Position numbers and translations under genes: made by a program. Shown here in pieces: positions 2,583 to 26,026 of a DNA stretch of 26,026 bases (its first letter is position 1; every line of letters begins with the position of its first letter). The notes under the pieces are model-generated. The model was given only the letters and a program-made list of their open reading frames with translations. It had not been told where the DNA came from and ran no database searches. Source of the stretch: Caecitellus pseudoparvulus (taxonomy: Eukaryota; Protista; Bigyra: Bicosoecida); NCBI GenBank assembly GCA_965644315.1, contig CBFFRQ010000021.1, forward strand, positions 1-26,026, given 5' to 3'.

Positions 2583-5500
2583 TCAAATCAACTCCTTCAA
2601 GCTCTCAAACTTGGTGGCTTCCTGTCTCACGCTGTCTGGGATCCTGCGGTGCCCCGTCAGGCCCAACAGCTCACGCACGATGTCTGTGTGGCCATTGCGA
2701 CATGCCCATCGGAAGCCAGCCTCAGGTCCACCCCAAGCCGCCGCGTGCACATCCACCTCCCGCGCCCCAGTCAGGCCCAGCAGCTCACGCACGATGTCTG
2801 TTTCGCCAAGGCGGCATGCCCATCGGAAGCCAGCCTCAGGCCCATCCTCATCCGCCGCATGCACATCCACCTCCCGCGCCCCGCTCAGGCCCAGCAGCTC
2901 ACGCACGATGTCTGTGCGGCCATTGCCGCATGCCTCTCGGAAGCCAGCCTCAGGTCCATCCTCATCCGCCGCATGCACATTCACCTCCCGCGCCCCGCTC
3001 AGGCCCAGCAGCTCACGCACGATGTCTGTGCGGCCATCGCGGCATGCCCATCGGAAGGCGGCCTCAGGTCCATCCTCATCCGCCGCATGCACATTCACCT
3101 CCCGCGCCCCGCTCAGGCCCAACAGCTCACGCACGATGTCTGTGCGGCCATCGCGGCATGCGTACCGGAAGGCGGCCTCAGGTCCATCCCCATCCGCCGC
3201 ATGCACATCCACCTCCCGCGCCCCGCTCAGGCCCAACAGCTCACGCACGATGTCTGTGCGGCCATCGCGGCATGCCCATCGGAAGGCGGCCTCAGGTCCA
3301 TCCTCATCCGCCGCATGCACATTCACCTCCCGCGCCCCGCTCAGGCCCAACAGCTCACGCACGATGTCTGCGTGGCCATTGCCGCATGCCCATCGGAAGG
3401 CAGCCTCAGGTCCATCCCCATCCGCCGCATGCACATCCACTGCCCGCGCCCCGCTCAGGCCCAACAGCTCACGCACGATGCCTGTGCGGCCCCAGCGGCA
3501 TGCACCTCGGAAGGCAGCCTCAGGTCCAGCCCCATCCGTCGCATGCACATCCACCTCCCGCGCCCCAGTGAGACCCAGCAGCTCACGCACGATGTCTATG
3601 TGTCCACTGTAGCATGCACCTCGGAAGCCAGCCTCAGGCCCATGATCATTCGCCGCATGCACATTCACCTCCCGCGCCCCAGTCAGGCCCAGCAGCTCAC
3701 GCACGATAGCTGTTTGTCCATTGGCGCATGCCTCTCGGAAGCCAGCCTCAGGTCCATCCCCATCCGCCGCATGCACATCCACTGCCCGCGCCCCGCTCAG
3801 GCCCAACAGCTCACGCACGATGCCTGTGCGGCCCCAGCGGCATGCCGCTCGGAAGCCAGCCTCAGGTCCATGCTCATCCGCCGCATGCACATCCACTTCC
3901 CGCGCCCCAGTCAGGCCCAGCAGCTCACGCACAATGTCTGTGTGGCCACTGGCACACGCGGCTCGGAAGGCAGCCTCAGGACCATCACTTCTGCGAAATG
4001 GCGCCACCTGAACAAATCCCGCCGCGTGCACGTCCACTGCCTCATCCCCCGTCAAAGACAGCAGCTCACGCACCCTGGCAAGTTTGCCATCCTTGCATGC
4101 TGTAATATACGCTGTCGTGTTCCCCTCACTGAATCTCTTCGGCTCAGGGGCTGGCTCCGACTCTGTTGCCGGTGCTGCCGCAGCTTCAGCTGTCTCCGCC
4201 TGCGCCTGAGCTGCCGCACCAGCTGCCTGCTCCTCATCAAGCACACCCCGCACAGCACTTTCCACACCTTCCAGATGACCCACTCCACCTCCACTTCCCT
4301 CACACGCCATCGCATATGTACCCATGCAGCAACCACTCCCTCCACTCTCCAACACCTCCAACGCGCTCAGCAGTCCATGCTCACCACCTTCACCGCTGCC
4401 CACGAAGTTTGAGTCAACCCCCGAACCGCCACCCAACGCACCACTCTCCATACCAAGCACCTCACACAAAACACACAACACACCACCACCATCACCTCTG
4501 CCACCATCAAGGCGAACTGTGCCCCACACACCGCCACATGCACTCAACACCACCTCACACCCACCCCCATCCAGTGCGCCCACCAGATCACCCACACTGC
4601 CACTCCCCACACCCACCACCACAAAGCTCCCCACACCCACACCACTCAGACTCACTCCACATGCCTCCGCCACAGCACACACACCCAGCACCCTCACAGC
4701 CACGCGCTGCTTCACCTCCAGCCCAACATCGCCCCACGCTTCATCCTCCAGGAACACCCTCAACGGCCACCCCGCCTCACACAGTACCTGCACCGTCACC
4801 ATGCTCCTCTGACCGAGTGGCTCATCAGCCCTGCCTGCTGTACTGCTGTGTGCTAGTGCTGCTCTGCGTGGAGTCTGCGCCATGCGCGGCAGTCCATGGG
4901 CGATGCGAGCAGCTTCGCCACGGTTCACAGCGCCAACACACGTGACAAGCGCTGTCGCACCCGCCTCCACACTCCCTGCCCACTGCTCCGCATCACCAGC
5001 TCCACCCACATCCTCATCCACGATCTCAACCCGTCCACTGTACACACTCACACCCTTGCCGTTCAGACACTCCAAGCCGCTCGACAAGTCCAAGCCATCC
5101 ACAGCCTTCACCCTCCGACCACTCATCACCGGCGCACACCCCAACAGCCCACGCAGCTCCTTCACTGCACTCGCTGCACTCTCCAAGTGCTCCGCAGCAC
5201 TCTCACTCGCCAGATCGCCTGCCGCCTCGCCTCGCAGCCAACCAGCCTGCTGACGCATGCCAGCCAGAGCCGCCTCCGCCGCTGCGTCGCCACCGGCATC
5301 ATGCGTGACTGGGCCACCTTCACCAGCTACATCCACCTCCACCCCCTCAAAGCCTTGCCACCATCGTGTCAGGTCAGCCAGCGCACCCTCCACGTTCACA
5401 CCGGCCCGCACACTGCCCCAAGCACCCACAATGGCGCCCCACAGTGCGCCACCCTCCGGCACTGCATCAACACCCACACCAGACACCGCTGTATGAAGCA

Positions 5501-5828
5501 CATCCACCGCGCAGAAGCACCGAAACGACAGATACTGCAGCGCAGCACACACGCCACCTCGCTCACGCTGCCCCGCCAACAGCCCAGCCTGCTCCAACAG
5601 CGCACTCCCCGCATCACGCAGTGCAGCCTCCAGCTCCACCAGGCTCATGGCCGATGGGGCGTCGCCTGCAGCAGGCGCTTCGCCACGCCCAATGGCTGCC
5701 AGTCCTCGCAGTGCTGGGCCGTGGTCCATGACGTTGCCCGGCAAGCACTTCACCTTGCCCAAGCATGCCGCTACCACCTCAGCCTGCGCGTCATCGATGC
5801 CTACAGTGGGCGCTGCAGCGCCCTCCAT
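2583..5828 (-). CDS. Ankyrin-repeat protein copy 1 (about 1081 aa from ATG 5828; ORF extends to 5957); cap plus 12 repeats
   Basis: Uninterrupted ORF. 38-aa repeat VDVHAADxxGPEA(A/G)FRxACxxGxTDIVRELLGL(T/S)GARE aligns with ankyrin DVNA.D..G.TPLH.A...GH.EIV..LL..GA. Confidence 0.9.
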   Translation of the reverse strand: MEGAAAPTVGIDDAQAEVVAACLGKVKCLPGNVMDHGPALRGLAAIGRGEAPAAGDAPSAMSLVELEAALRDAGSALLEQAGLLAGQRERGGVCAALQYLSFRCFCAVDVLHTAVSGVGVDAVPEGGALWGAIVGAWGSVRAGVNVEGALADLTRWWQGFEGVEVDVAGEGGPVTHDAGGDAAAEAALAGMRQQAGWLRGEAAGDLASESAAEHLESAASAVKELRGLLGCAPVMSGRRVKAVDGLDLSSGLECLNGKGVSVYSGRVEIVDEDVGGAGDAEQWAGSVEAGATALVTCVGAVNRGEAARIAHGLPRMAQTPRRAALAHSSTAGRADEPLGQRSMVTVQVLCEAGWPLRVFLEDEAWGDVGLEVKQRVAVRVLGVCAVAEACGVSLSGVGVGSFVVVGVGSGSVGDLVGALDGGGCEVVLSACGGVWGTVRLDGGRGDGGGVLCVLCEVLGMESGALGGGSGVDSNFVGSGEGGEHGLLSALEVLESGGSGCCMGTYAMACEGSGGGVGHLEGVESAVRGVLDEEQAAGAAAQAQAETAEAAAAPATESEPAPEPKRFSEGNTTAYITACKDGKLARVRELLSLTGDEAVDVHAAGFVQVAPFRRSDGPEAAFRAACASGHTDIVRELLGLTGAREVDVHAADEHGPEAGFRAACRWGRTGIVRELLGLSGARAVDVHAADGDGPEAGFREACANGQTAIVRELLGLTGAREVNVHAANDHGPEAGFRGACYSGHIDIVRELLGLTGAREVDVHATDGAGPEAAFRGACRWGRTGIVRELLGLSGARAVDVHAADGDGPEAAFRWACGNGHADIVRELLGLSGAREVNVHAADEDGPEAAFRWACRDGRTDIVRELLGLSGAREVDVHAADGDGPEAAFRYACRDGRTDIVRELLGLSGAREVNVHAADEDGPEAAFRWACRDGRTDIVRELLGLSGAREVNVHAADEDGPEAGFREACGNGRTDIVRELLGLSGAREVDVHAADEDGPEAGFRWACRLGETDIVRELLGLTGAREVDVHAAAWGGPEAGFRWACRNGHTDIVRELLGLTGHRRIPDSVRQEATKFESLKELI
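2650..4110 (-). repeat. 114-bp coding tandem repeat array, copy 1 (12 units plus degenerate first unit)
   Basis: cagctcacgcacgatgtctg recurs at a 114-bp period. Confidence 0.95.
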
Positions 5829-6569
5829 GGCTTGTCCTGTTGCTGCTGCCTGAGGCGTCGGGGAGGGGCAGGGCGCTGTGTGCTGTGGTGTGTGTGCGAC
5901 ACGCTTTGTCGCAAGTGCTGGCGAAAGCGAGGCACCACGCCCACGCCCACGCACCATGGCAATGGACGGCAGGGGGTCTAGTCAGGCGTAGCTGTGCTGT
6001 AAAGCCGACTCCTGCGGGGTGATGGCAGTGGACGCGTGTGTTGGTGCTGTGGGAAGGCGCTGTCGCAGCTTACGTGTGCGAGGGAGCAACTTCCGCACTT
6101 GCACCAGTGCAAGCTCACCTGTCGCGGCCAGAAGTGGAGACAAGGCAGAAGACACGCTGATGTCCGGATGCCCAATGAACCCACAAGTAAGAGTGGGAAA
6201 TGGATGAGGAGCAATTTGGTGCAAGACATGTGAAGGGTGTCCCGCTCCGCTCGATGCGGTGCGCATCATCTCAGCAAGAGAGGTGCGGAACTAGCTATCT
6301 GGACATCCGCAAGATCCCCGTTCGAGTGCTGACGGGAGCTGCGTCAAGGCGCGGAGTGCGATGGAGGGGGTGGACTCGTGCGCTCCGAGCAGCGCTGTCC
6401 ATACACGGCACTGGGCGGGGCAAAACCGCCCGCTTTGCTGTGCCCGCACTTTTGTGTGTAAGGGTTGCGGCCTTGTCGTGTCTGGCAGTGTGGCTCCGTC
6501 ACCCTTCCTTGCCCACACGATATTCATTGGCGTGGTGGCGACTGCTCTGTCCCAAGCCACAACAAAGCC
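5829..6569. promoter_or_regulatory. Putative bidirectional promoter/5' UTR region between divergent ankyrin and SEC12-like starts (also 281-1017, 10480-11217, 21546-22286)
   Basis: Position between head-to-head ATGs only; no motif identified. Confidence 0.35.
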
Positions 6570-8127: not shown

Positions 8128-10479
8128 TTAGTCTGTGCTTGGGGCCTGGGGCTGAATCAAGTCTTTCAAGCCCTCAAACTTGGCTGCTTGCTGCCGCACA
8201 GTGTCTGGGATCCTGCGATGCCCAGTGAGGCCCAGCAGCTCACGCACGATGTCTATACGGCCATTGATACATGCGCCTCGGAAGGCGGCCTCGGGTCCAC
8301 GCCTATCCGCCGCGTGCACATCCACCTCCCGCGCCCCAGTGAGGCCCAGCAGCTCACGCACGATGTCTGTGCAGCCCCAGCGGCATGCTCCTCGGAAGCC
8401 AGCCTCAGGTCCAGACCCATCCGCCGCATGCACATCCACCTCCCGCGCCCCAGTCAGGCCCAACAGCTCACGCACGATGTCTGTACGGCCATGGAGGCAT
8501 GCGCCTCGGAAGCCAGCCTCAGGTCCAGACCCATCCGCCGCATGCACATCCACCTCCCGCGCCCCAGTCAGGCCCAACAGCTCACGCACGATGTCTGTGC
8601 GGCCCCTGGCGCATGCCACTCGGAAAGCGGCCTCAGGGCCCTGTCTGCAAACCCCTGGCCGGATCTCAACACTTCCTTCCTCATGCACATCCACTGCCTC
8701 ATCCCCCGTCAATGCCAGCAGCTCGCGCACTCTCGCAAGCTCCCCATCTTTGCACGCTTCCACAAACGCTGTGGTGTTCTCCTCACTGAACTTCACTTGC
8801 TTGGCAGCAATTTCCAACTCTGTAGCCGGTACAGCCTCTGCGTCAGCTGTCTCCGCCTGACCCGCCGCACCAGCTGCCTGCTCCTCATCAAGCATACATC
8901 GCACAGCACTTTCCACACCTTCCAGATGACCCAAGTCACCCCCACTTCCTTCACACGCCATCGCATATGCACCCATGCAGCAACCACTCCTTCCCCGCGC
9001 CAACACCTCCAACGCACTCGACAGTGCATGCTCATCACCTTCACTGCTCCCCACAAAGCTCGACCCAACGCCCGATCCGCCACCCATCGCACCACCGTCC
9101 ACATCAAGCACCTCACGCAGCACACTCAACACACCACCACCCTCACCACTGCCGCCATCCCAGTGACCAGTGCCCCACACTCTGCCACATGCACTCAACA
9201 CCACCTCGCACCCACCCCCATCCAGTGCCCCCACCAGATCACCCACACTGCCACTCCCCACACCCACCATCACGAAGCTCCCTACACCCACACCACTCAG
9301 ACTCACTCCACACGCCTCCGCCACAGCACACACACCCAGCACCCTCACAGCCACCCGCTGCTTCACATCCAGCCCAACATCGCCCCACGCTTCATCCTCC
9401 AGGAACACTCTTAACGGCCAACCCGCCTCACACTGCACCTGCACTGTGACACTGCTCCTCTCGCCAACCGGCTCATCAGCCCTGCCTGCTGTGCTGCTGT
9501 GTGCCAGTGCTGCTCTGCGTGGAGTCTGCGCCATCCGCGGCAGGCCATGGGCGATGCGAGTCGCTTCGCCACGCTTCACAGCGCCAACACTCGTGGCAAG
9601 CGCCCTCGCACCCGCCTCCACCTTTGCTGTCCACTGCTCCACATCCCCAGCTCCACCCACATCCTCATCCACGATCTCGCTCCGCCCACTGTACACACTC
9701 ACATCCTTGCCGTTCAGGCACTCCAAGCCGCCCGACAAGTCCAAGCCACCCACAGCCCTCACCTTCCGACCACTCATCACCGGCGCACACCCCAGCAGCC
9801 CACGCAGCTCCCCCACTGCACTCGCAGCACACTCCAAGTGCTCCGCAGCACTCTCACTCCTCAGCTCCCCTGCCGCCTCGCCTCGCAGCCACTCAGCCTG
9901 CTGACGCATGCCAGCCAGAGCCGCATCCGCCGCTGCCTCGCCACCGGCATCATGTGTGAGTGGGCCACCCTCACCAGCCACATCCACATCCGCCCCCTCG
10001 AAGCCTTGCCACCATCGCGTCAGATCTGCCAGCGCACCCTCCACGTTCACACCGGCCCGCACACTGCCCCAAGCACCCACAATGGCGCCCCACAGTGCGT
10101 CGCCCACCGGCACTGCATCAACACTCACGCCAGATGCCGCCTGATGCAGCACATCCACCGCGCAGAAGCACCGAAACGACAGGTACTGCAGCGCAGCACA
10201 CACACCACCTCGCTCATGCTGCCCCACCAGCAGCCCAGCCTGCTCCAACAGCGCACTCCCCGCATCACGCAGTGCAGCCTCCAGCTCCACCAGGCTCATG
10301 GCCGCTGGGGCGTCGCCTGTAACAGGCGCTTCGCCACGCCCAATGGCTGCAAGTCCTCTCAGTGCTGGGCCGTGGTCCATGACGCTGCCCGGCAAGCACT
10401 TCATCTTGCGCAAGCATGCCGCCACCGCCTCAGCCTGTATGTCGTCGACGCCTGCAGTGGGCGCTGCACTACCGTCCAT
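8128..10479 (-). CDS. Ankyrin-repeat protein copy 2 (about 783 aa from ATG 10479; ORF extends to 10608); cap plus 4 repeats
   Basis: Uninterrupted ORF paralogous to copy 1, with a short C-terminal extension QPQAPSTD. Confidence 0.9.
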   Translation of the reverse strand: MDGSAAPTAGVDDIQAEAVAACLRKMKCLPGSVMDHGPALRGLAAIGRGEAPVTGDAPAAMSLVELEAALRDAGSALLEQAGLLVGQHERGGVCAALQYLSFRCFCAVDVLHQAASGVSVDAVPVGDALWGAIVGAWGSVRAGVNVEGALADLTRWWQGFEGADVDVAGEGGPLTHDAGGEAAADAALAGMRQQAEWLRGEAAGELRSESAAEHLECAASAVGELRGLLGCAPVMSGRKVRAVGGLDLSGGLECLNGKDVSVYSGRSEIVDEDVGGAGDVEQWTAKVEAGARALATSVGAVKRGEATRIAHGLPRMAQTPRRAALAHSSTAGRADEPVGERSSVTVQVQCEAGWPLRVFLEDEAWGDVGLDVKQRVAVRVLGVCAVAEACGVSLSGVGVGSFVMVGVGSGSVGDLVGALDGGGCEVVLSACGRVWGTGHWDGGSGEGGGVLSVLREVLDVDGGAMGGGSGVGSSFVGSSEGDEHALSSALEVLARGRSGCCMGAYAMACEGSGGDLGHLEGVESAVRCMLDEEQAAGAAGQAETADAEAVPATELEIAAKQVKFSEENTTAFVEACKDGELARVRELLALTGDEAVDVHEEGSVEIRPGVCRQGPEAAFRVACARGRTDIVRELLGLTGAREVDVHAADGSGPEAGFRGACLHGRTDIVRELLGLTGAREVDVHAADGSGPEAGFRGACRWGCTDIVRELLGLTGAREVDVHAADRRGPEAAFRGACINGRIDIVRELLGLTGHRRIPDTVRQQAAKFEGLKDLIQPQAPSTD
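8221..8765 (-). repeat. 114-bp coding tandem repeat array, copy 2 (4 units plus cap)
   Basis: Same 114-bp unit. Confidence 0.93.
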
Positions 10480-11217
10480 GGCTTGTCCTGTTGCTGCTGC
10501 CTGTGGCGTCGGGGAGGGGCAGGGCGCTGTGTGCTGTGGTTTGTGTGCGACACGCTTTGTCGCAAGTGCTGGCGAAAGCGAGGTGCCATGCCCACACCCA
10601 CGCACCATGGCGATGGAGAGTAGGGGATCTTGCCAAGTGTGGCAGTGCTACGTAGGTGGATCCTGTGGGGTGGATGCAGTGGGCAGGGTGTGTTGGTGTG
10701 GCGGGGAGGCGCTGTCGCAGCTGACGTGCGAGGGAGCAACTTCCGCACTTGCACCAGTGCAAGCTCACCTGTGGCGGCCAGAAGTGGAGACAAGGCACAA
10801 TGCACGCTGATGTGCAAATGTCCCGTGACATCACAGGTGTTTGGGATACAAATGAGGTGCATTTTGGTGGCAGGCATCTCAAATGTGTCCCGCTCCGCTC
10901 GATGCGGTGCGCATCATCTCAGCAAGAAAGGTGCGGAACTAGCTATCTGGACATCCGCAAGATCCCCGTTCGAGTGCTGACGGGAGCTGCGCCAAGGCGC
11001 GGAGTGCGATGGAGGGGGTCGACTCGTGCGCTCCGAGCAGCGCTGTCCGTGCACGGCACTGGACGGGGCAAAACCGCCCGCTTTGCTGTGCCCGCACTTA
11101 TGCGTGTAAGGGTTGCGGCCTTGTCGTGTCTGGCAGTGTGGCTCCGTCACGCTTCCTTGCCCACTCGATATTCATTGGCGTGGTGGCGATTGCTCTGTCC
11201 CAAGCCACAACAAAGCC

Positions 11218-12703: not shown

Positions 12704-14447
12704 TCAAATCAAGTCCTTCAAGCTCTCAAACTTGGTGGCTTCCTGTCGCACGCTGTCTGGGATCCTGCGATGCCCAGTGAGGCCCAGCAGCTCACGCACG
12801 ATGTCTGTGTGGCCATTCTCGCATGCCCATCGGAAGCCGGCCTCAGGTCCACCCTCATCCGCCGCATGCACATCCACCTCCCGCGCCCCAGTGAGGCCCA
12901 ACAGCTCACGCACGATGTCTGTATAGCCATTGTGGCATGCCAGTCGGAAGCCAGCCTCAGGTCCATCCTCATCCGCCGCGTGCACATCCACCTCCCGCGC
13001 CCCAGTCAGGCCCAGCAGCTCACGCACGACATCTGTGCGGCCATTGTAGCATGCCAATCGAAAGCCAGCCTCAGGTCCAGCCCGATCCGCCACATGCACA
13101 TCCACTTCCCGCGCCCCAGTGAGATCCAGCAGCTCACGCACGATGTCTGTGTGGCCCCAGCGGCATGCCAGCCGGAAGGCGGCCTCAGGTCCATCCCCAT
13201 CCGCCGCATGCACATCCACCTCCCGCGCACCAGTGAGGCCCAACAGCTCACGCACGACATCTGTGCGGCCATTGTAGCATGCCCATCGGAAGGCGGCCTC
13301 AGGTCCACCCCAAGTCGCCGCATGCACATCGACTTCCCGCGCCCCAGTCAGGCCCAGCAGCTCACGCACGATGTCTGTATGGCCATTGTGGCATGCCAGC
13401 CGGAAGCCAGCCTCAGGTCCATCCCCATCCGCCGCATGCACATCCACCTCCCGCGCCCCGCTCAGGCCCAACAGCTCACGCACAATGTCTGTGCGGCCAT
13501 AGCGGCATGCCCATCGGAAGCCGGCCTCAGGTCCACCCTCATCCGCCGCGTGCACATCCACTTCCCGCGCCCCAGTCAGGCCCAGCAGCTCACGCACGAT
13601 GTCTGTGTGGCCATTGACGCATGCCCATCGGAAGCCAGCCTCGGGTCCATCCCCATCCGCCGCGTGCACATCCACCTCCCGCGCACCAGTGAGGCCCAGC
13701 AGCTCACGCACGACATCTGTGCGGCCCCAGCGGCATGCCTCTCGAAAGGCGGCCTCGGGTCCATCCCCATCCGCCGCATGCACATCCACCTCCCGCGCCC
13801 CAGTCAGACCCAGCAGCTCACGCACGATGTCTGTGCGGCCATCGCCGCATGCCCATCGGAAGGCAGCCTCACGGCCATTGCTGGTGCGCCCAATCAAGTC
13901 CACAACACATCCTTCCGCATGTATATTCACTGCCTCATCCCCCGTCAATGACAGCAACTCGCGCACTCTCGCAAGCTCCCCATCCTTGCACGCTTCCACA
14001 AACGCTGTGGTGCTCTCCTCGCTGAACGTCACTTGCTCGGCAGCAATCTCCGACTCTGTAGCCGGTACAGCCTCAGCTTGAGCTGTCTCCGCCTGACCTG
14101 CCGCAGCAGCTGCCTGCTCACCATCAAGCACACTCCGCACAGCACTTTCCACACCTGACAAACGCCCCACTCCACCCCCACTTCCTTCACATGCCATCGC
14201 ATATGCACCCATGCAGCAACCACTCCCTCCCCTCCCCAACACCTCCAACGCGCTCGTCAGTTCAAGCTTAACACCTTCACCGCTGCCCACGAAGCTTGAC
14301 CCAACGCTCGAGTCGCCACCCATCGCACCACCTCCCACACCAAGCACCTCACGCAGCACACCTAACACACCGCCACCCTCATCACCACAGCAGCCGCCGT
14401 CAGAGCTACCTGTGCCCCACACACCGCCACATGCACTCAACACCACC
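12704..14447 (-). pseudogene. Ankyrin-repeat gene copy 3, 3' part (cap plus 10 repeats), separated from its 5' part by the retrotransposon
   Basis: Homology to the paralogues resumes at VVLSACGGVWG. Deleting 14448-20271 rejoins it in frame with 20272-21545 (about 1005 aa). Confidence 0.9.
12771..14000 (-). repeat. 114-bp coding tandem repeat array, copy 3 (10 units plus cap)
   Basis: Same 114-bp unit. Confidence 0.93.
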
Positions 14448-14621
14448 GAGGTTGCCGGCACCCCAGCCGGCAACCATGTTTCCCGGCAGGAGGGGCGGCG
14501 GGCAGTCCCACGCTAGTGGCACAATTGTCCCCCGCCGCCCCAACGCAGAGTAGACGACGGCAGGACCGGGCATGACAAAACCAGTCATTAGCCGGCCTCG
14601 TCACTCTCTTTCCTTTTTTTT
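14448..14621 (+). repeat. Split direct repeat A1 (174 bp)
   Basis: Identical by eye to 19934-20107; ends in an oligo-T tract. Confidence 0.95.
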
Positions 14622-14625
14622 CGAG

Positions 14626-16708
14626 ATGGCATCGGATGATCCAGCTTCCAGCGACACGGAGGGCGGAAGCTGGGAGGACATCCACGACAAAATGATGTCT
14701 GTCAACTCCGCCAAGCAAGCCAAGGCGCTCATAACGGAGCAGGAGTTCGAGTACTGGCTGAAGTGGGCGGATTCTGAGGATTTTGGTAAGATGGAGGCCG
14801 CTTGGCGCCTCCGGGAGGTGCCCGAGGGATTCCGGGCAGATCGCATGCGATCCCTCATTGCGGGCAGAGCTTTCCGCCTCCCCGCTGACGGTGCCCCTCA
14901 TCGCGCAGGCGGCTCACCACGGGGGCACGGCACGAAGCGAACCCGTCCGCGCGGTGCGAGCAGTGGCACGCCCTACGGCCCGCACCTACCCCCGCGCCCG
15001 ACCCAGCCGGACGCAGTCGCAGGCGACCTCCCGCAAGATCCCGCCACAGTGCTTACGTGGTTCCTGCAGAGGGGAGCGACGGTGCCGAGCGAGGACGTCG
15101 CCGTGCAGCTGCAGTTCTACGTGGGCTTGGCAACGGAGGAGACATCGCCGTACGCCCTCTCCGCTTGGCCTCCACGGCGCTTCGCCGCATGGTGCAGACT
15201 CAACGGTATTCCCCCCGACCTCACCCCCGACGACATCGTGATGCATTTGCAGCGGGTCCTGGAGGCCGCGCTGGCGGGCGACGACGACTTTGGCGACGAC
15301 GATGCCGGCGCCCCGTTCTTTCCCGTTTTCCCGGGCACCACACCGGATGCCGCCCGGTTACAGCCCCGTGCGGCGGCCCCGGGTCACCCCCCGGCCTCCA
15401 AGAGGCACAGGGCGGCCTATAGCCCGCAGCCCCCCTCCCCCGTGGGGCGGCGGAGCCTCGCCGGCAGTCCACCCCGAAGGCGGGTCGGCTGTTTTCGGTC
15501 ACATGGGGGAGAACAGCGGTCGGTCGTCGCCAGCCGACGAGGTACTGGTCACTGTAGGCGCGCTGCGGGTCATTGGGCCGACCGCACACCCCTCGTCGGC
15601 GGTGGCCCGGGACCGCCTGTCAGCCTTGGGGGCAGTTTTCGCTGCGGGGACCACAGACGCCTTGACCACGGTGGCTGTCGAGATGGCTGAGGCTGCTGCA
15701 CGAGAGGTGCCCGCAGCAACGGGCCCAGTGCCGTCAGGTACGTTCCTGTCCCGCCAGCTCCCCCCCCACTCGCCCCGCGTGCCCGCTCCCGGCGACCCGT
15801 CCTGGCTCACAGCCCCCGGCGATGAGGTAGCCCCGCCGTCCGCGTCGGTCATGATGGACGACGCTATGGACGTAGTGACTGCTGTACGCCTGGTGCAAGG
15901 GAGGGTGGAAGTTACAGTTGACCCAACCCATCTAGTGGCAGTAACTGGGGCGGGTGCCCTGTCGGCATGCCACATGCTGGGCAACCGTGGGGGCGCTTGG
16001 TGGCTTGCTGCGATGACCAGGGACTTGCTGACGGCGCCTTCCGACGACCTCCACCGCTCCCTCCGAGCGTTCTGGTGGAAGTGGGCGTCCGAGGTGCCCG
16101 CCCTGGCAGACCAGCGGGGCCTGTGCCGAGCCATGGCGTGCGCACTCCTGATCACAATCGCAGTGCGGGCCGTGGCGCAGACCGCCGCTGCGTTGCCCGA
16201 AGGCCAGCGCAGGCGATGGGCCCAGCTGACGTGGGCCTCCTGGGTGGCCACGTTCCGCACTAACGCCACCATTGTCATGATGGCGTCGGCGACGGGGCAA
16301 GCACTGGTGGCCAGCTCGCTGGCGCGCGAGGCATGGGCGGCCGGGGCCGCCGCCACACCGATGCCAGGTGCGGGGGGCGGCCCGGCGCAAACCCCCGCTC
16401 GTGGCCCTCCCGCGGGGCTGTACCGGCAGGACGACCCGAGCACATTCGTGTGGTGCCCCGGGTGCGTCGGATCCGACCGGCGGCGCCGGTCGCTGGCATC
16501 CTGCCCACGCCTGGCCCAGCATGTGGCCCACCTGCGCCGGACCCACACAGTCGGAGGTAAGCCCGCAGAACTTACCCAGGCGCAGGCAGTGGCCATGCTG
16601 GTGCGCCAGTGGGAGCGGAAGGTGGCATCCAAGGGACGTGACTTCCAGCGGCGCATGCAGCCCCGCGCTGTCACCACGGCCATGGTGGAGGCAGCTCTCA
16701 GCCTCTAG
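14626..16708 (+). CDS. ORF1, gag-like, split by a frame change near 15430-15441
   Basis: First position in the element, ATG just after A1 (MASDDPAS...). Continues in ORF 15290-16708 with a Cys/His cluster WCPGC..C..QHVAHLRRTH. Function inferred from position only. Confidence 0.55.
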
Positions 16709-16711
16709 GAG

Positions 16712-18926
16712 GTGGGCCGGAGCGCGGTGGTGAGAGCGACCACGGGGTACCGGGCCGTGCCCGTGGAGTGGAGGGCTGCCGCCCCGCTCTCGACAGACCA
16801 CCGCGCCATGGCCGTGCTCATCGAATCAATGGTCCAGCAGCTGCATGGGGACCGTTGTTGGACTCCACCGGGGCTCTTCGAGGACATCTTGCGTGGGGGC
16901 TTGGACTGGGGCCCCCACCCCGTGGTCTCATACTGGGGTTGCCAGGAGGCCCACGCTGACGTGTGTCCCGCATGCGGCGAGACCACTTCCAGATTACGGC
17001 AGCTTGAGCGGTGCGCAGCCATGCGACTGCTCACCGTGGTCACGCTGCGCGGGTGGGACCCCGCTTGGCTGCTGTTCCGCCGCCCCCCGGCAGCGGCATC
17101 CCCGTCCTCGGCATACGTGCTGCAGCCGCACGACGAGCGGGCGGTGGCAGCGGCCTATGACGCCTTCGCGGCTGCGCGCGTGCTGCAGCCGGTCACCCCC
17201 AGCAGCTGCAGCAGCACCGAAAGATGGGGGGGCCAGCCGCTTCTGCCTTCGTTGTCACGACATGGGCCCCCCAGCCGGGCGTCAGCGACGAAGCTCTGCG
17301 ACAGTGGGCTGCTGCGAACCCAGGCGAGGCGGTGCAGGCCGCCAGCTCTTCCCGCGCGCCCGCCCGCCCGAGCCGCCTGTTCCGGGCCAAGCAGCGGGTG
17401 GTGTACGATCTGGCAGCCGTCAACCAGGCCTCAGTGAGCCCCCCATTCCACTACCCCACGCTGGAGAGCTGGGCGCTGCGCCTCCCGCCGAACTCGGACT
17501 GTGTTGTCCTGGACGTGGAAGCAGGGTACACGGCCATCCCCATCGCTCCGTCGGGCGCCGGACTGTTCACCATGCTCGCCCAGGGCAGGCCAGCCTTCCG
17601 CATGCTTCGGATGGCCTTCGGGTACAGCCCGGCCGGGGCCATTTTCTGCTTTTTTTCTGGACTTCTGGGCGCCAAGATCGAAGCGGCGTTCCCAGCAGGG
17701 CATGTGGTTGTGTACGTAGACGACGTCGGGCTTGGGGGAGCTACGTTGGGGCCACGGCCATCGATCGTGCCCAAGATAACTCAACTGTTCGAGGACGTGG
17801 GCTTCCGGGTGTCGCGCAAGAAGACGCAAGGGCCACAGCGCGTCGTTCAGTACTTGGGGATGGTGGTCAGGTGTGCCCCGTGTGGGGTGTACCTTGAGTG
17901 TCCTCAAGCCAAACGAACTCAGCTGCGGTGGCAGCTGGCCGCGGTCCTTAATCGCCTCGGCGCTTGCTCCACCATCCCCAAGCGCGTTTTCGCCGCGGTC
18001 ACAGGGCGCTTGCACGGCCTGTCGGCCGTGGTGCCCCACGCAAAACAAACGCTGTCGCTCTTGTACGACACCATGCGCACACACAAGTACCGCGTCGGCC
18101 CCCCGGCGCTCTCGTGCCTGTCCCCCCGGCGTCGCACGGGGCCCTGCGGACCCTCCTTGAGGCCCTCGGTGGGCCGTTATCGACGGGCCCGATGCGCCCG
18201 CTCTCCCCACTGTCAAGCAGGTGGCGCGCCGCCCTCTTTGGCTCGTGCGACGCGTCGGGGGAAGGCGGGCTGGGGGCAACAGTGTCGAGGTGGGCAGGGC
18301 CAGGAGAACGCACAGACTCCGCTTGGTACGCGTCCATGCGCATCCCCGGCACAGCCCCGGGCGAGGAGCTCGTGGGAGCCTCCACGATGCTGGAGCTGTA
18401 CGCAATCGCCTTGGCTATGGCAATGGCGCGGCATGTTTTTCCCGAGCCGGGGCCGCTGCTGCTATGCCTAGCTGCGGACAGCCAGGCAGCGGTGGCGCTG
18501 GCGCGACGAGGGTACAGCAAGCACAGCCGTGAACTCACGCGCGTCTGCGGGGTCCTCGAGCGGGTTTCCCGCGTTTTGGACGTCCACTTGGCGCCTCGGT
18601 GGATCCCGAGGAGCCTGAATTGGCGGGCGGACGCCCTCAGCCACCCCGAAAGGGTGGATAGCAGCACACCGGCAGCGCTCGGCCTCCCGCCAGGGCAACC
18701 AGCCGAGCTGGAGGTATCAGCAGGGGGAAGCAGCGCCGCTGAGCGGTGGCATGATGTGTCCCTAGACGTAGGGCCGTCGGGAAAGGCCGGGGCGGGCACC
18801 GCGTGGATTCACTCAGCTCAACTCTCCGTCGCCCTGCACAGACACACTCTGGATAAGGAAGCAGACCTTCTGGCAGATGATCAGGGCCATCCCCGCGTCC
18901 CCGATCAGCAGGATTCACCAACATAG
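16712..18926 (+). CDS. pol: Pol: DIRS-type reverse transcriptase plus RNase H, with frame changes near 17200 and 18104
   Basis: RT motifs KQRVVYDLAAVN, LDVEAGYTAIPI, MAFGYSPA, YVDD, GFRVSRKKT, YLGMVV. RNase H D-E-D-D residues in CDAS, LELYAI, ADSQAAV, NWRADALS. Start uncertain (GTG 16712 or ATG 16808). Confidence 0.9.
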
Positions 18927-19776
18927 GCTGGCAAAGGGGACGGTGGTCAAGTACGTTCGCGCGGTTGCTGGCCTGATCAGGGCCGCTCCAGCACCCCGGG
19001 ACAGGGCGCGGACCATGGTGGGCATCTTAACGGGCGGCGTGGCCGCAGGCAGATGGGCCCCCCATCGGGCGAAGCAGATCCTGGCGCAATGGGTCGGTGG
19101 TTTTAGGTATCTGGGCCTGCCAATCCCGTCGCTAGCCCCGCTGGGGCTCACAGTCGGCAGCATCTGCCGGGCAATCCGCCGGCTCCACCGAGGGAGAGGG
19201 GAGCAACACCGCCGCCCTATCAGCAAAGAACAAGTCATGGAGGCCATGAAGCGGGCATGGGACGGGCCACACCTCGGGAGGCATGCCCCAACTGCCGCCG
19301 CAGCTATCTACATCGGCTTTCATGGCATGTGCAGGCCGGGAGAGCTCCGGGGCCTGCGATGGGAGGAGTTGCACTTCGGGCGGGCGGGCCCCCTGCAGTG
19401 GGTGGAGGCCAGGGTCACGGATAAAACGCACCTGAGTGCAAACCGCCACATCCAGGTGGTGCGCCAGGCCGAGTGGGCGGGGGCCTTCGACCGCCTCCGG
19501 GAGCAGGCCCGGGACAAGCGGGGAAGCCTGCTCCCAAGGTGGGCGTGGCTCAGCCTGCAAGGCATCCTGAAGGCTGTAGCGGGCGTGTCCTTGGCCCACC
19601 TGAGACCCGGGGGCAATATGTTCTGGACAGGCCGGGCCCCCGACGTCTTGGTGGAGCACGCGGCGGGCTGGGCGGCTGGCTCCCCCACCCGGGCACGATA
19701 CTACACCCAGGGGGGGGGGGAGGGGGCGAGGCTGTGGCACGAGGCCATGACACCCAGGGGAGGAAGCAAGCATTGA
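18877..19776 (+). CDS. Tyrosine recombinase (YR), 299 aa, overlapping the pol 3' end
   Basis: Catalytic pattern GFHGMCRPGEL (R), DKT (K), AHLRPGG (R), AGW (W), RARYY (Y). Confidence 0.88.
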   Translation: MIRAIPASPISRIHQHRLAKGTVVKYVRAVAGLIRAAPAPRDRARTMVGILTGGVAAGRWAPHRAKQILAQWVGGFRYLGLPIPSLAPLGLTVGSICRAIRRLHRGRGEQHRRPISKEQVMEAMKRAWDGPHLGRHAPTAAAAIYIGFHGMCRPGELRGLRWEELHFGRAGPLQWVEARVTDKTHLSANRHIQVVRQAEWAGAFDRLREQARDKRGSLLPRWAWLSLQGILKAVAGVSLAHLRPGGNMFWTGRAPDVLVEHAAGWAAGSPTRARYYTQGGGEGARLWHEAMTPRGGSKH

Positions 19777-19781
19777 AAAGT

Positions 19782-19930
19782 ATTGGCGGGTGCCGCAAGG
19801 AGGCGTCCCCTCCCCCAAGAGATGCAGCGAGCCCTGGTGGCCGCTGGCATAGAGGGGGGAGGGGACGGCCTCGAGGCGGGCCCAGTTCAATGCATTTCGA
19901 TTGCCACGCACAACGCACCAACACGAGGGA
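19782..19930 (+). repeat. Split direct repeat B1 (149 bp)
   Basis: Identical by eye to 20120-20268. Confidence 0.95.
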
Positions 19931-19933
19931 ACC

Positions 19934-20107
19934 GAGGTTGCCGGCACCCCAGCCGGCAACCATGTTTCCCGGCAGGAGGGGCGGCGGGCAGTCCCACGCT
20001 AGTGGCACAATTGTCCCCCGCCGCCCCAACGCAGAGTAGACGACGGCAGGACCGGGCATGACAAAACCAGTCATTAGCCGGCCTCGTCACTCTCTTTCCT
20101 TTTTTTT
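19934..20107 (+). repeat. Split direct repeat A2
   Basis: Copy of 14448-14621. Confidence 0.95.
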
Positions 20108-20119
20108 TTCTTTTTCTCG

Positions 20120-20268
20120 ATTGGCGGGTGCCGCAAGGAGGCGTCCCCTCCCCCAAGAGATGCAGCGAGCCCTGGTGGCCGCTGGCATAGAGGGGGGAGG
20201 GGACGGCCTCGAGGCGGGCCCAGTTCAATGCATTTCGATTGCCACGCACAACGCACCAACACGAGGGA
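20120..20268 (+). repeat. Split direct repeat B2
   Basis: Copy of 19782-19930; followed by ACC and then host sequence. Confidence 0.95.
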
Positions 20269-20271
20269 ACC

Positions 20272-21545: not shown

Positions 21546-22286
21546 GACTTGTCTTGTTGCTGCTGCCTGAGGCGTTGGGGAGGGGCAGGGCGCTGTGTGC
21601 TGTGGTGTGTGTGCGACACGCTTTGTCGCAAGTGCTGGCGAAAGCGAGGTGCCGTGCCCACATCCACGCACCATGGCGATGGACGGCAGAGGGTCTAGTC
21701 AGGCGTAGCTGTGCTGTAAAGCCGACTCCTGCGGGGTGATGGCAGTGGACGCGTGTGTTGGTGCCGTGGGGAGGCGCTGTCGCAGCTGACGTGTGCGACG
21801 GAGCAACTTCCGCACTTGCACCAGTGCACGCTCACCTGTGGCGGCCAAGACTGGAGACAAGGCACAATGCACGCTGATGTGCAGATGCCCAATGACACCA
21901 CAAGTGAGAGTGGGAAGTGGATGAGGAGCAATTTGATGCAAGATATATGAAGGGTGTCCCGCTCCGCTCGATGCGGTGCCCATCATCCCAGCAAGAAAGG
22001 TGCGGAACTAGCTATCTGGACATCCGCAAGATCCCCGTTCGAGTGCTGACGGGAGCTGCGCCAAGGCGCGGAGTGCGATGGAGGGGGTGGACTCGTGCGC
22101 TCCGAGCAGCGCTGTCCATACACGGCACTGGGCGGGGCAAAACCGCCCGCTTTGCTGTGCCCGCACTTTTGTGTGTAAGGGTTGCGGCCTTGTCGTGTCT
22201 GGCAGTGTGGCTCCGTCACACTTCCTTGCCCACACGATATCCATTGGCGTGGTGGCCCCTGCTCCGCCCCAAGCCACAACAAAGCC

Positions 22287-23859: not shown

Positions 23860-26026
23860 TCAAATCAACTCCTTCAAGCTCTCAAACTTGGTGGCTTCCT
23901 GCCGCACACTGTCTGGGATCTTGCGATCACCAGTCAGGCCCAACAGCTCACGCACGATATCTGTGTGGCCATTGCCGCATGCCACTCGGAAGGCGGCCTC
24001 AGGTCCACCCCGAGCCGCCGCATGCACATCCACCTCCCGCGCCCCAGTCAGGCCCAGCAGCATACGCACGATGTCTGTGTGGCCATTGACGCATGCCCCT
24101 CGGAAGCCAGCCTCAGGTCCAGCCCCATCCGCCGCATGCACATCCACCTCCCGCGCCCCGCTCAGGCCCAGCAGCTCACGCACGATGTCTGTGTGGCCCT
24201 TGGTGCATGCCCATCGGAAGGCAGCCTCAGGCCCATACCCATCCGCCGCGTGCACATCCACCTCCCGCGCCCCAGTGAGGCCCAGCAGCTCACGCACGAT
24301 GTCCGTGCGGCCCCAGCGGCATGCCACTCGGAAGGCGGCCTCAGGTCCACGCTCATCTGCCGCGTGCACATCCACCTCCCGCGCCCCAGTCAGGCCCAAC
24401 AGCTCACGCACGATGTCTGTGCGGCCCCTGGCGCATGCCACTCGGAAAGCGGCCTCAGGGCCCTTTCTATAGAACCTAAGCCTCACCTCAACTCTTCCTT
24501 CCACATGCACATCCACTGCCTCATCCCCCGTCAATGACAGCAACTCGCGCACTCTCGCAAGCTCCCCATCCTCGCACGCTGCTACAAACGCTGTGGTGTT
24601 CTCCTCGCTGAACTTCACTTGCTCGGCAGCAACCTCCGACTCTGTAGCCGGTACAGCCTCTGCGTCAGCTGTCTCCGCCTGCCCTGCCGCATCAGCTGCA
24701 TGCTCACCATCAAGCACACCCCGCACAGCACTTTCCACACCCTCCAGACGTCCCACTCCACCCCCACTTCCTTCACATGCCATGGCATATGCACCCATGC
24801 AGCAACCACTCCCTCCCCGCCCCAACACCTCCAACGCGCTCGACAGTGCACGCTCATCACCTTCGCCGCTGCCCACAAAGCTCGACACTACGCCCGATCC
24901 GCCACCCAACGCACCACCTCCTACACCAAGCACCTGACACAGCACACCCAACACACCATCACCCTCACCACCACGGCAGCCGCCATCAGAGCTACCTGTG
25001 CCCCACACACCGCCACATGCACTCAACACCACCTCACACCCACCCCCATCCAGTGCGCCCACCAGATCACCCACACTGCCACTCCCCACACCCACCACCA
25101 CAAAGCTCCCCACACCCATACCACTCACATCCACCCCACATGCCTCCGCCACAGCACACACACCCAGTACCCGCACAGCCACGCGCTGCTTCACATCCAG
25201 CCCAACATCGCCCCACGCTTCATCCTCCAGGAACGCCCTCAGCGGCCACCCCGCCTCACACTGCACCTGCACTGTGACACTGCTCCTCTCACCACTTGGC
25301 TCATCAGCTCGGCCACCAATGACTCCATGTGCGAGTGCTGCTCTGCGTGGTGTCTGCGCCATCCGCGGTAGTCCATGCGCGATGCGAGTCGCTTCGCCAC
25401 GCTTCACAGCGCCAACACTCGTGGCAAGCGCCCTCGCACCCGCCTCCACACTCCCTGCCCACTGCCCCACATCCACAGCTCCACCCACATCCTCATCCAC
25501 GATCTCAACCCGCCCACTGTACACACTCACACCCTTGCCGTTCAGGCACTCCAAGCCGCCCGACAAGTCCAACCCGCCCACAGCCTTCACCTTCCGACCA
25601 CTCATCACCGGCGCACACCCCAACAGCCCACGCAGCTCCTCCACTGCGCTCGCTGCACACTCCAGTTGCTCCGCAGCTCTCTCACTCCTCAGCTCACCTG
25701 CCGCCTCGCCTCGCAGCCACTCAGCCTGCTGCCGCATGCCAGCTAGAGCCGCATCCATCGCTGCCTCGCCACCGGCATCATGTGTGACGGGCCCACCCCC
25801 ACCAGCCACATCTACATCGGCCACCTCAAAGCCTTGCCACCATCGCGTCAGGTCAGCCAGCGCACCCTCCACGTTCACACCGCTCCGTACACTGCCCCAA
25901 GCACCCACAATGGCGCCCCACAGTGCTTCGCCCTCCGGCACTGCATCAACACTCACACCAGATGCCGCTTGATGAAGCACATCCACCGCGCAGAAGCACC
26001 GAAATGACAGGTACTGCAGCGCAGCA
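23860..26026 (-). CDS. Ankyrin-repeat protein copy 4 (5' end beyond the window); cap plus 5 repeats
   Basis: Open frame paralogous to copies 1-3, running to the right edge. Confidence 0.88.
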   Translation of the reverse strand, partial: AALQYLSFRCFCAVDVLHQAASGVSVDAVPEGEALWGAIVGAWGSVRSGVNVEGALADLTRWWQGFEVADVDVAGGGGPVTHDAGGEAAMDAALAGMRQQAEWLRGEAAGELRSERAAEQLECAASAVEELRGLLGCAPVMSGRKVKAVGGLDLSGGLECLNGKGVSVYSGRVEIVDEDVGGAVDVGQWAGSVEAGARALATSVGAVKRGEATRIAHGLPRMAQTPRRAALAHGVIGGRADEPSGERSSVTVQVQCEAGWPLRAFLEDEAWGDVGLDVKQRVAVRVLGVCAVAEACGVDVSGMGVGSFVVVGVGSGSVGDLVGALDGGGCEVVLSACGGVWGTGSSDGGCRGGEGDGVLGVLCQVLGVGGGALGGGSGVVSSFVGSGEGDERALSSALEVLGRGGSGCCMGAYAMACEGSGGGVGRLEGVESAVRGVLDGEHAADAAGQAETADAEAVPATESEVAAEQVKFSEENTTAFVAACEDGELARVRELLSLTGDEAVDVHVEGRVEVRLRFYRKGPEAAFRVACARGRTDIVRELLGLTGAREVDVHAADERGPEAAFRVACRWGRTDIVRELLGLTGAREVDVHAADGYGPEAAFRWACTKGHTDIVRELLGLSGAREVDVHAADGAGPEAGFRGACVNGHTDIVRMLLGLTGAREVDVHAAARGGPEAAFRVACGNGHTDIVRELLGLTGDRKIPDSVRQEATKFESLKELI
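23927..24590 (-). repeat. 114-bp coding tandem repeat array, copy 4 (5 units plus cap)
   Basis: Same 114-bp unit. Confidence 0.93.

Follow-up and report, generated by a model that had tools for sequence, protein, structure and literature searches.

A length-fixed, sequence-variable insertion at the first junction of an ankyrin-repeat family in Caecitellus pseudoparvulus

The window, a 26,026-nucleotide stretch of DNA from Caecitellus pseudoparvulus, carries four members of an ankyrin-repeat family, all on the minus strand. The host is a GC-rich marine protist with a 30.6-Mb genome, assembled in 215 contigs. Gene 1 (2583..5957; open reading frame and translation) encodes 1,124 residues: about 640 residues made up of a conserved region without a Pfam match and a linker, then a cap repeat, a loop and 12 junctions of 38-residue repeats, with Pfam ankyrin families matching the C-terminal part only. 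Its translation contains an N-terminal cap repeat of 37 residues whose C-terminal end is DEAVDVH (4026..4136, minus strand; modelled helices H7-19 and H22-29), the loop AAGFVQVAPFRRSD, of the 'PFRRSD' type (3984..4025, minus strand), and, following the loop, the first full 38-residue ankyrin-like repeat (3870..3983, minus strand). Gene 2 (8128..10608, minus strand; open reading frame, translation and Pfam, with the ankyrin domain modelled) is shorter, with 826 residues and four junctions, and its translated loop EEGSVEIRPGVCRQ is of the 'GVCRQ' type (8641..8682, minus strand). Gene 3 is interrupted: its C-terminal part (12704..14473, minus strand; translation and self-comparison), which includes the translated loop AEGCVVDLIGRTSN (13877..13918, minus strand), is separated by about 5.8 kb of unrelated DNA (14447-20269) from an N-terminal part running from about 20269 to 21674, the break being called from self-comparison, where homology to the other units stops at 14447 and restarts at 20269. 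Gene 4 (23860..25986, minus strand; open reading frame and translation) has its N-terminus past the window end, and its translated loop VEGRVEVRLRFYRK is of the 'RFYRK' type (24463..24504, minus strand). In all four genes the loop sits between V-x-V/I-H of the cap and G-P/R-E-A of the next repeat, and minus-strand translation reproduces exactly the four peptides that had been proposed as hypervariable loops.

The repeat is a variant within the ankyrin fold, although it departs from the canonical form, having a period of 114 nt, or 38 residues, against 33 and the motif G-P-E-A-A-F-R instead of G-x-T-P-L-H. Genes 1 and 2 both match ankyrin profiles of Pfam clan CL0465. Gene 1 scores 121.8 bits with Ank_2 against a cut-off of 27.3 and also passes with Ank_3, Ank, Ank_5 and Ank_4; gene 2 passes with four of these five (Ank_3, Ank_2, Ank_5 and Ank), Ank_4 falling under its cut-off. 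AlphaFold models of both proteins have paired helices in each repeat, and the top Foldseek matches are DARPins and FEM1B, at probability 1.00 and with TM scores up to 0.84 by target. A search of the 1,124 and 826 residues returned no NACHT or NB-ARC domain, nor any other non-ankyrin Pfam family, at E values up to 0.1. Sequence and models together support reading the loop as a lengthened first finger in the ankyrin stack. The original prediction had pictured this finger as an extended beta-hairpin. The ankyrin stack stands, and both models draw the loop as a pair of short strands that turn at positions 8-9, but at a pLDDT of about 50 or lower, so the loop may form a hairpin, as modelled.

The length of the first junction takes only two values. 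Among 55 family genes taken as a census set (the family is larger than this), it is 14 residues in 30 and 5 in 25. Gene 1 has one junction of 14 followed by eleven of 5. The expected difference between first and ordinary junctions holds in all four window genes, and across the 30 loci every one of 171 other junctions has 5 residues, a count that exempts two truncated ends and one gene in which junctions 2 and 5 have the 14-residue form. Family members have from 2 to 15 junctions. Roughly half of a large ankyrin family thus has a fixed-length 14-residue insert in its first loop. The more distant paralogues (40-55% identity) all have a 5-residue first junction, and we therefore take 14 to be the derived state. 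Beyond this genome, a protein search found only 10 relatives, all of them ENA metagenome proteins, one of which has the 14-residue loop; JGI metagenome contigs scanned with a degenerate cap-plus-loop pattern gave no match. We suggest that a lineage-specific insertion of 9 residues (14 versus 5) entered the first beta-hairpin finger, at the junction of N-cap and first repeat, with a single origin within the family's core clade.

Judged by their sequences, the 30 genomic loops are plainly homologous, and all of them align codon by codon without a gap. The loop base is conserved, with the pattern x-E/A-G-x-V-E/K-V/I, while positions 4 and 8-13 vary. The loop has an entropy of 1.9 bits and its flanks 0.5, and at positions 4 and 8-12 the value rises to 2.3-3.2 bits. 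Among the four window copies G3 and V5 are indeed the only residues common to all; genome-wide, 25 of 28 glycine codons at G3 are GGA and 26 of 27 valine codons at V5 are GTT. Arg, Ser and aromatic residues are abundant at the variable positions and acidic ones nearly absent, the tip being 22% aromatic, 21% basic and 2% acidic. The length of the loop is constant. We found no indel in any of the 30 loops, as had been proposed for the window copies, and no stop either, while the distance to the loop from where the matched upstream region begins spans 187 to 213 residues (29 of the 30 copies, the retroelement-interrupted gene 3 being left out). Purifying selection would hold both base and length, probably because these supply a short hairpin with its first strand and hinge; position 4 and the residues of the turn and second strand (positions 8-13) would be free, or selected to differ.

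Between window copies, loop DNA is 48-69% identical, compared with 77-96% for the cap plus first repeat, which puts the loop among the lowest 0-8% of all 42-nt windows; it is therefore a real local island of divergence between near-identical flanks, as first described. The same description had called the loops almost unrelated and unique to each paralogue. Both are accurate for the four window copies only: genome-wide several loops are nearly identical, and the loops fall into a few types (PFRRSD, GVCRQ, GFHKQ, RFYRK and STWLHSQ) that recur in genes on different contigs. The gene 1 loop differs at 1 of 42 nt from that of a gene on contig C196, and as a 60-nt query it is 82% identical to a C92 gene; the gene 2 query is 92-95% identical to loops of C22, C196 and C32 genes, and the gene 4 query 95% identical to a C158 gene and 90% to two C142 genes. 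A genome-wide search with the 60-nt query of gene 3 found no second copy of its loop, whose first five codons are those of one C22 gene, L034. Overall, loops of the same type are 83-98% identical (93-98% in 7 of 10 pairs) where their flanks are 77-96% identical, whereas neighbours of different type have loops 33-69% identical between caps and first repeats that are 77-98% identical and upstream regions that are up to 100% identical.

The reading that we think probable, if far from certain, is that the loop is a derived, length-constrained extra finger whose diversity comes from point substitution and is reshuffled by recombination between paralogues. Ordinary point substitutions would have given rise to a small number of discrete loop types, which persist in genes of different contigs. 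The N-terminal region would be homogenised by gene conversion and by recombination among paralogues, and re-paired by them with different loop-plus-ankyrin parts. As for function, the finger is likely to provide an additional point of contact next to the concave binding face, and the loop could then act as a coarse determinant of type on top of the fine specificity given by five hypervariable positions in each repeat. On this reading the loop, likened at the outset to CDR3, changes through ordinary mutation and recombination instead of an antibody-like mechanism; no donors and no mutation bias were found.

An alternative that we consider unlikely, though not far-fetched, is that the loop is an idle, tolerated insertion whose distal half drifts, the types being mere lineages by descent. 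The substitution rates speak on both sides. In 15 independent nearest-flank pairs, nonsynonymous divergence (pN) is 0.34 in the loop and 0.43 in the tip, with a synonymous divergence (pS) of 0.21 in the flanks, giving ratios of 1.6 and 2.1 that are inflated because gene conversion lowers the synonymous rate of the flanks; for the four window copies the figures are 0.475 in the loop and 0.257 in the flanks. Loop divergence thus exceeds flank synonymous divergence, the comparison on which the original prediction had staked its case, and a tip pN twice the flank pS is more than an idle spacer predicts. Nonsynonymous changes are also commoner relative to synonymous ones in loops than in flanks (Fisher p=0.0075; state counts p=5e-7). 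Measured within the loop, pN/pS is 0.87-1.0 (another estimate, 1.48, is not significantly above 1), and therefore the variable half could simply be unconstrained; likewise the minimum ratio of nonsynonymous to synonymous states is 3.0, near the neutral expectation of about 3.4 from site counts. Selection may favour loop diversity, but the 'extreme' diversifying selection first proposed is not what these values describe, and the diversity signal is weaker in the loop than at the canonical hypervariable positions of the repeats: in the first repeat the framework has a pN/pS of 0.13-0.16, and the five hypervariable positions have a pN of 0.38-0.51 and a local pN/pS of 4-5. We dismissed the raised in-loop Nei-Gojobori pS (0.39-0.53) as an artefact of multiply changed codons, because codons for the same residue show no rise (0.10 at conserved loop codons, 0.15 in the flanks). 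The low pLDDT of the loop in both models would also suit an idle spacer, as would the way in which loop-tip identity tracks flank identity (Mantel r=0.35, p=0.0002), the pattern expected from simple descent. Against drift, none of the 30 copies has an indel, and none has a stop although 4.8 changes creating one were expected (P=0.009), and G3 and V5 are kept even at the third codon position (difference 0.14, versus 0.25 at fourfold sites of the flanks). Loops of one type are moreover as alike as their flanks or more so, as in a pair with 1 of 42 loop nucleotides changed and a 13% flank difference, and the basic and aromatic skew of the tip is not what drift predicts.

It is also possible, though we think it unlikely and speculative, that the loop is an 'allotype' determinant of a germline recognition repertoire, in which balancing or type-specific selection keeps the finger types apart against conversion. 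If so, each array would combine every finger type with many repeat surfaces, giving a two-tier specificity code undescribed for natural ankyrin proteins. Loop type covaries only weakly with the hypervariable residues of the repeat that follows (Mantel r=0.10, p=0.054).

Rather than the loops changing faster, conversion might keep erasing the divergence of the flanks but bypass the loop types, these differing too much to be converted together, which would leave the loop as an older island. We find this doubtful, even though it fits much of the evidence for recombination that the favoured reading also draws on. Flank identity (upstream region, cap and first repeat) is 77-96% for pairs of the same and of different type alike, while loop identity is bimodal, and the loop types disagree with the upstream tree, on which two of them are rejected as clades (AU p 0.003 and 0.006, for groups named post hoc with the tree already seen). 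Third-position GC is lower in the loop (0.52, compared with 0.66 in the flanks), as expected with less biased gene conversion, and a clear conversion tract ends at the loop: the tandem pair L058/L060 shares 552 identical upstream nucleotides ending 8 nt before loops that are only 33% identical. We read this pair as the end of a gene-conversion tract, because the repeats downstream of the loop are also only 80-88% identical. However, older loops should have accumulated more synonymous change, and at conserved loop codons synonymous difference is lower than in the flanks, in a comparison biased towards recently related pairs; loop changes are, in addition, overwhelmingly nonsynonymous relative to those of the flanks.

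That the loop is rewritten in a programmed way, from silent donor cassettes or by targeted hypermutation, we regard as highly improbable. The models for such a process are lamprey VLR assembly, antigenic-variation gene conversion and diversity-generating retroelements, and a variable segment of fixed length between near-identical flanks does recall them, as do the gene 3 loop, which looks chimeric between two types, and the L058/L060 pair with its unrelated loops after identical upstream DNA. Yet that pair, the sharpest cassette-like case, differs over its whole ankyrin part and not in the loop alone, and the loop types are stable across arrays; the cassette exchange envisaged earlier is not supported. 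We found no orphan donor in the 30.6-Mb genome: loop-like DNA, including every match to the loop queries, occurs only at junctions of full-length genes, in a search of the 215 contigs with a pattern for the conserved loop half and four 60-nt loop queries, which very short or divergent donors would escape. Six matches with one mismatch to the pattern lie outside known family genes; the four that were translated have no ankyrin context, and we therefore took these matches as chance, a reversed-pattern control giving a similar number. In passing, no reverse-transcriptase/template pair was noticed beside the genes, where the only extra DNA is the insertion that splits gene 3. In these searches no silent partial donors, the mark of a cassette-assembled receptor, turned up, and no loop had a second copy outside genes; a target of a diversity-generating retroelement would have a template repeat close to a reverse transcriptase and would differ from that template specifically at adenines. 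The biased mutation spectrum that was to be looked for did not appear, the spectrum and the transition:transversion ratio in the loop being no different from those of the flanks (chi-square p=0.21; counts pairwise and tree-free), nor is synonymous change at conserved loop codons raised. Compared over 2,041 nt, Logan contigs from four public runs list no variant inside 3984-4025, but these contigs are about 100-300 nt long, drop rare variants and mix paralogues at 90% likeness, and so are mute on within-clone variation, RNA and splicing. Least credible of all is that some or all of the 42 nt is a tiny intron that leaves the mRNA with an ordinary short junction: many loops contain GAG/GT and end in CAG/GG, like splice sites, but the candidate GT...AG segments measure 24 or 30 nt by eye and not the 27 nt that would restore 5 residues, introns of that size are to our knowledge confined to a few lineages, and specific codons are conserved in a segment that is a multiple of three, without stop or indel, in 30 of 30 copies.

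The length-constrained finger that we favour has partial counterparts in several known systems. Near-identical repeats with a few hypervariable positions are already known from fungal immune-type receptors, the NOD-like receptors, whose ANK, TPR and WD repeat domains are highly internally conserved (Dyrka et al. 2014, PMC4986451). As in those receptors (PMC4986451), repeats here are 84-90% identical to one another in DNA by self-comparison and vary in number from gene to gene, the fastest change falls on about five positions of each ankyrin repeat, located on the concave face and hairpin, and exchange of repeats and gene parts takes place both inside one paralogue and from one to another. Unlike them, the proteins described here come from a marine protist and not a fungus, have a repeat of 38 residues rather than 33, and have an N-terminal region that matches no Pfam family, with no NACHT or NB-ARC domain detected. 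We are not aware of any description of a fixed-length extended first finger in fungal NOD-like receptors. Elongated finger loops also interrupt an otherwise canonical stack in the ankyrin domains of TRPV channels, where they are conserved in single-copy orthologues (PMC2654082), whereas ours vary across dozens of paralogues. In lamprey VLRs, with the variable insert of their C-terminal LRR cap, and in antibody CDR3, a protruding variable loop likewise adjoins a repeat-built binding surface. Those loops are of variable length and are put together somatically, either from donor cassettes or through V(D)J joining. The fingers described here differ in having a fixed length, germline diversity, few types and no donors that we could find.

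A further comparison is with LoopDARPins (Schilling, Schoppe and Pluckthun 2014, as presented via PMC5405424), in which a longer, protruding and diverse loop replaces the hairpin turn and complements the concave randomised surface. According to that account those proteins are engineered and have the loop in an internal repeat, whereas this one is natural, lies at the junction of cap and first repeat, is shorter at 14 residues and has a conserved first half, and its binding is putative. If the finger does not contact ligands, it is no more than a tolerated insertion in a fast-evolving family. If it does, as we suspect, swapping loops would offer a simple handle on what the family recognises, and the loop itself would be a natural template for loop-bearing ankyrin binders. 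Engineers gave DARPins a long variable loop to reach new epitopes; this family, with a length-locked finger that has a conserved stem and a basic and aromatic variable tip and is kept in a few types over its many tandem genes, seems to have reached something comparable independently.

The 14-residue loop between the cap repeat and the first full ankyrin repeat is a real feature of this gene family: an extra finger of derived origin and fixed length whose tip varies, probably serving as an added specificity element. The window (G+C 65%) carries four tandem units of ~5.5 kb, each with one minus-strand protein in which ~640 residues, a conserved region without a Pfam match and then a linker, precede a C-terminal part that begins with an N-terminal cap repeat and continues as a row of ankyrin-like repeats, 38 residues each and near-identical. 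An unrelated stretch of ~5.8 kb interrupts gene 3: homology with the other units ends at 14447 and starts again at 20269. The four loop peptides and their positions (3984-4025, 8641-8682, 13877-13918 and 24463-24504, minus strand) are exactly as the original prediction gave them, and its 5-residue ordinary junctions recur 171 times across 30 family loci. Across these loci the 14-residue form is always at the first junction, bar one gene on contig C19 of the genome assembly, G000. In that gene (L030 / L054, G000:C19:74826-78403), alone in having a 14-residue insert elsewhere than at the first junction, SAGKISTGLFGSGE occupies junctions 2 and 5, apparently through the copying of a three-repeat block that includes it; the first junction has 5 residues. 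Searching the assembly (30.6 Mb in 215 contigs, with DNA also present in marine metagenomes) with the 203 residues preceding the loop gave 76 matches, nearly all inside open frames of 600-1,600 residues, and ~55 of them extend through the cap. First junctions are exactly 14 residues long in 30 and exactly 5 in 25 of the 55 retrieved, with no other length among them. In a tree built from the upstream region all distant paralogues have 5 residues, and the 14-residue state is therefore derived; inside the core clade both states occur intermingled, implying at least 8 changes.

The divergence of the loop is local and strong. Among the four window copies its DNA is 48-69% identical, versus 77-96% for the cap and first repeat, and among all 42-nt windows in pairwise alignments of these copies it ranks within the bottom 0-8%, so the divergence is real and no chance fluctuation. 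The earlier impression that the loops are hard to align even as DNA was an artefact of having only four copies, two of them outliers: the 30 loops align codon by codon without gaps and are homologous, not unrelated. Their majority sequence is A-E-G-N-V-E-V-R-P-G-F-H-S-Q. G3 is present in 28 of the 30 (codon GGA in 25) and V5 in 27 (GTT in 26), and positions E/K6, V/I7, P9 and Q14 are also mostly kept. Entropy is 2.3-3.2 bits at positions 4 and 8-12, with means of 1.9 bits over the loop and 0.5 bits over the flanks (cap plus repeat 1). Variant codons at variable positions are mostly single-base neighbours (for example AAT/AGT/TGT/AGA/AAA/ACA at position 4), the pattern expected of ordinary point substitution.

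For 15 independent pairs picked by nearest flanks, pN, pS and pN/pS are 0.34, 0.39 and 0.87 for the whole loop; 0.43, 0.53 and 0.82 for its tip (positions 4 and 8-13); 0.07, 0.21 and 0.35 for the flanks; and 0.38, 0.09 and 4.3 for the repeat-1 hypervariable positions. Loop pN is thus 1.6 times and tip pN 2.1 times flank pS, and the four window copies give a loop pN of 0.475 versus a flank pS of 0.257, so in these comparisons divergence in the loop exceeds synonymous divergence in the flanks, in keeping with the original prediction. When pairs are matched instead by nearest loop, the loop is the less diverged (pN 0.087 and pS 0.059 versus a flank pS of 0.166). Codons with several changes artificially raise pS within the loop; where codons keep their residue, the synonymous difference is 0.10 in the loop versus 0.15 in the flanks, and third positions of G3 and V5 differ in 0.14 of comparisons versus 0.25 at flank fourfold sites. 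Counted without a tree, nonsynonymous and synonymous states stand at 77:26 for the loop, at 75:97 for the framework and at 34:5 for the canonical hypervariable positions; against a neutral expectation of ~3.4:1 from site counts, this puts the loop close to neutrality and the canonical positions above it. Overall, the loop tip changes as fast as expected under neutrality or faster, but the proposed "extreme" diversifying selection is not supported: the sign of positive selection is modest, gene conversion in the flanks confounds it, and the canonical positions show a stronger one. The loop codons of 30 paralogues (3984-4025 in gene 1, for example) have a third-position G+C of 0.52, versus 0.66 in cap and repeat, a difference consistent with less biased gene conversion, or else quicker turnover of residues, in the loop.

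The loop had also been proposed to be unique to each paralogue, but a few types recur on different contigs, so it is neither paralogue-specific nor in continual flux. The PFRRSD type is found in gene 1 and on contigs C196, C92 and C32; GVCRQ in gene 2 and on C22, C196, C32, C211 and C142; GFHKQ on C22 and C79; RFYRK in gene 4 and on C158 and C142; and STWLHSQ with related forms in the C71 array. Between contigs, loops of one type share 83-98% identity (93-98% in 7 of 10 compared pairs) and their flanks, here upstream, cap and first repeat, 77-96%; gene 1 and its C196 counterpart differ at 1 of 42 nucleotides within the loop and at 13% of positions in the flanks. For neighbours of different types, identity is 33-69% in the loop, 77-98% in cap and first repeat, and up to 100% in the upstream stretch. 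Loop-tip identity tracks flank identity (Mantel r=0.35, p=0.0002); no such relation is seen for the canonical hypervariable positions of the next repeat (r=0.06).

Exchange of cassettes or a hypermutating process, as in a CDR3-like system, would offer another source of this diversity. In L058 and L060, tandem genes 4.8 kb apart on C79 (G000:C79:23101-24161 and 27942-29002), 552 nt of upstream coding DNA are 100% identical up to 8 nt before the loop, after which the loop is 33% and all following repeats 80-88% identical, a very recent conversion or duplication tract that ends sharply where the variable part starts. AU tests on the upstream tree reject both the PFRRSD and the GVCRQ group as a clade (p=0.003 and 0.006), the groups having been named after the tree was seen. 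The gene-3 loop (13877-13918), of which the genome holds no second copy, looks chimeric in its sequence, its first five codons being identical to the start of the GFHKQ-type loop in gene L034 on C22 and its final four residues (R-T-S-N) resembling the R-R-S-D end of the PFRRSD type of gene 1. Paralogues in the family do recombine. Neither a degenerate pattern for the conserved loop half nor four 60-nt loop queries found a donor cassette in the genome. The 20 exact pattern matches all lie at known junctions, the surplus over a reversed-pattern control is explained by known genes, and the 60-nt queries match only first junctions of full genes; six one-mismatch matches lie outside known family genes, and the four of these retrieved lack ankyrin context. 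Substitution spectrum and transition:transversion ratio are no different in the loop from the flanks (p=0.21), leaving no sign of mutational bias. With no donors found in the assembly, a flank-like spectrum and few types common to several contigs, the loop is very probably not CDR3-like, cassette-driven or hypermutating. Rather, ordinary mutation would diversify the loop, and recombination between paralogues would reshuffle loops.

The 30 copies contain no indel in the loop and no stop codon, where the codons observed and the fewest changes needed to connect them predict 4.8 stop-creating changes (P=0.009), and the loop base residues are kept even at the codon level; the loop is therefore very probably coding, not a tiny intron, and probably structurally constrained, not a free spacer. 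From the matched upstream start to the loop there are 187-213 residues in 29 of the 30 copies, a range that leaves out interrupted gene 3. AlphaFold, run on alignments of 30 paralogues with gene 1 or gene 2 first, predicted ankyrin stacks both times (mean pLDDT 77.6 and 76.8), and Foldseek groups the first model with DARPins and FEM1B. Of the extended beta-hairpin in the original prediction, both models retain two short strands (residues 44-47 and 50-53 in one run, 45-47 and 50-52 in the other) and a turn at loop positions 8-9, at a pLDDT of ~50 or lower, so that a hairpin finger is plausible, not established.

Only 10 relatives outside the assembly were found in the database searched, all ENA metagenome proteins, one of them with a 14-residue loop of the GVCRQ kind; a loop-pattern scan of JGI metagenome contigs found no match. 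The relative with the GVCRQ-kind loop, 83% identical (P0001 / L086, on a 3,260-nt ENA metagenome scaffold), has the 14-residue first loop VEGSVVVRSRVCGQ and, at its second junction, a different 12-13-residue insert, AATIGGFFSTRLY, so finger insertions in the wider family are not confined to one site. In another (P0008, 1,099 residues) the same N-terminal region leads into one or two repeats of the ankyrin-like kind and from there into Sel1-type repeats (PF08238) in a long row; this module thus pairs with different repeat types. Contigs from a seawater library labelled metatranscriptomic align to 4575-5758, in the N-terminal region of gene 1, with 4-13 differences, but the run is flagged as probably DNA and they are not evidence of expression.

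As a whole, the family resembles the repeat domains of fungal NOD-like receptors, whose ANK, TPR and WD repeat domains are highly internally conserved, vary in repeat number, evolve in concert and have about five positions under selection in each ankyrin repeat (PMC4986451), although no NOD domain is detected in the protist proteins. Natural extended fingers are known from TRPV ankyrin domains (PMC2654082), and in LoopDARPins an extended finger was engineered in, adding a protruding variable loop (PMC5405424). What is new relative to all three is a length-locked insert at the cap junction, with a conserved stem and a variable tip, occurring as few types across arrays.
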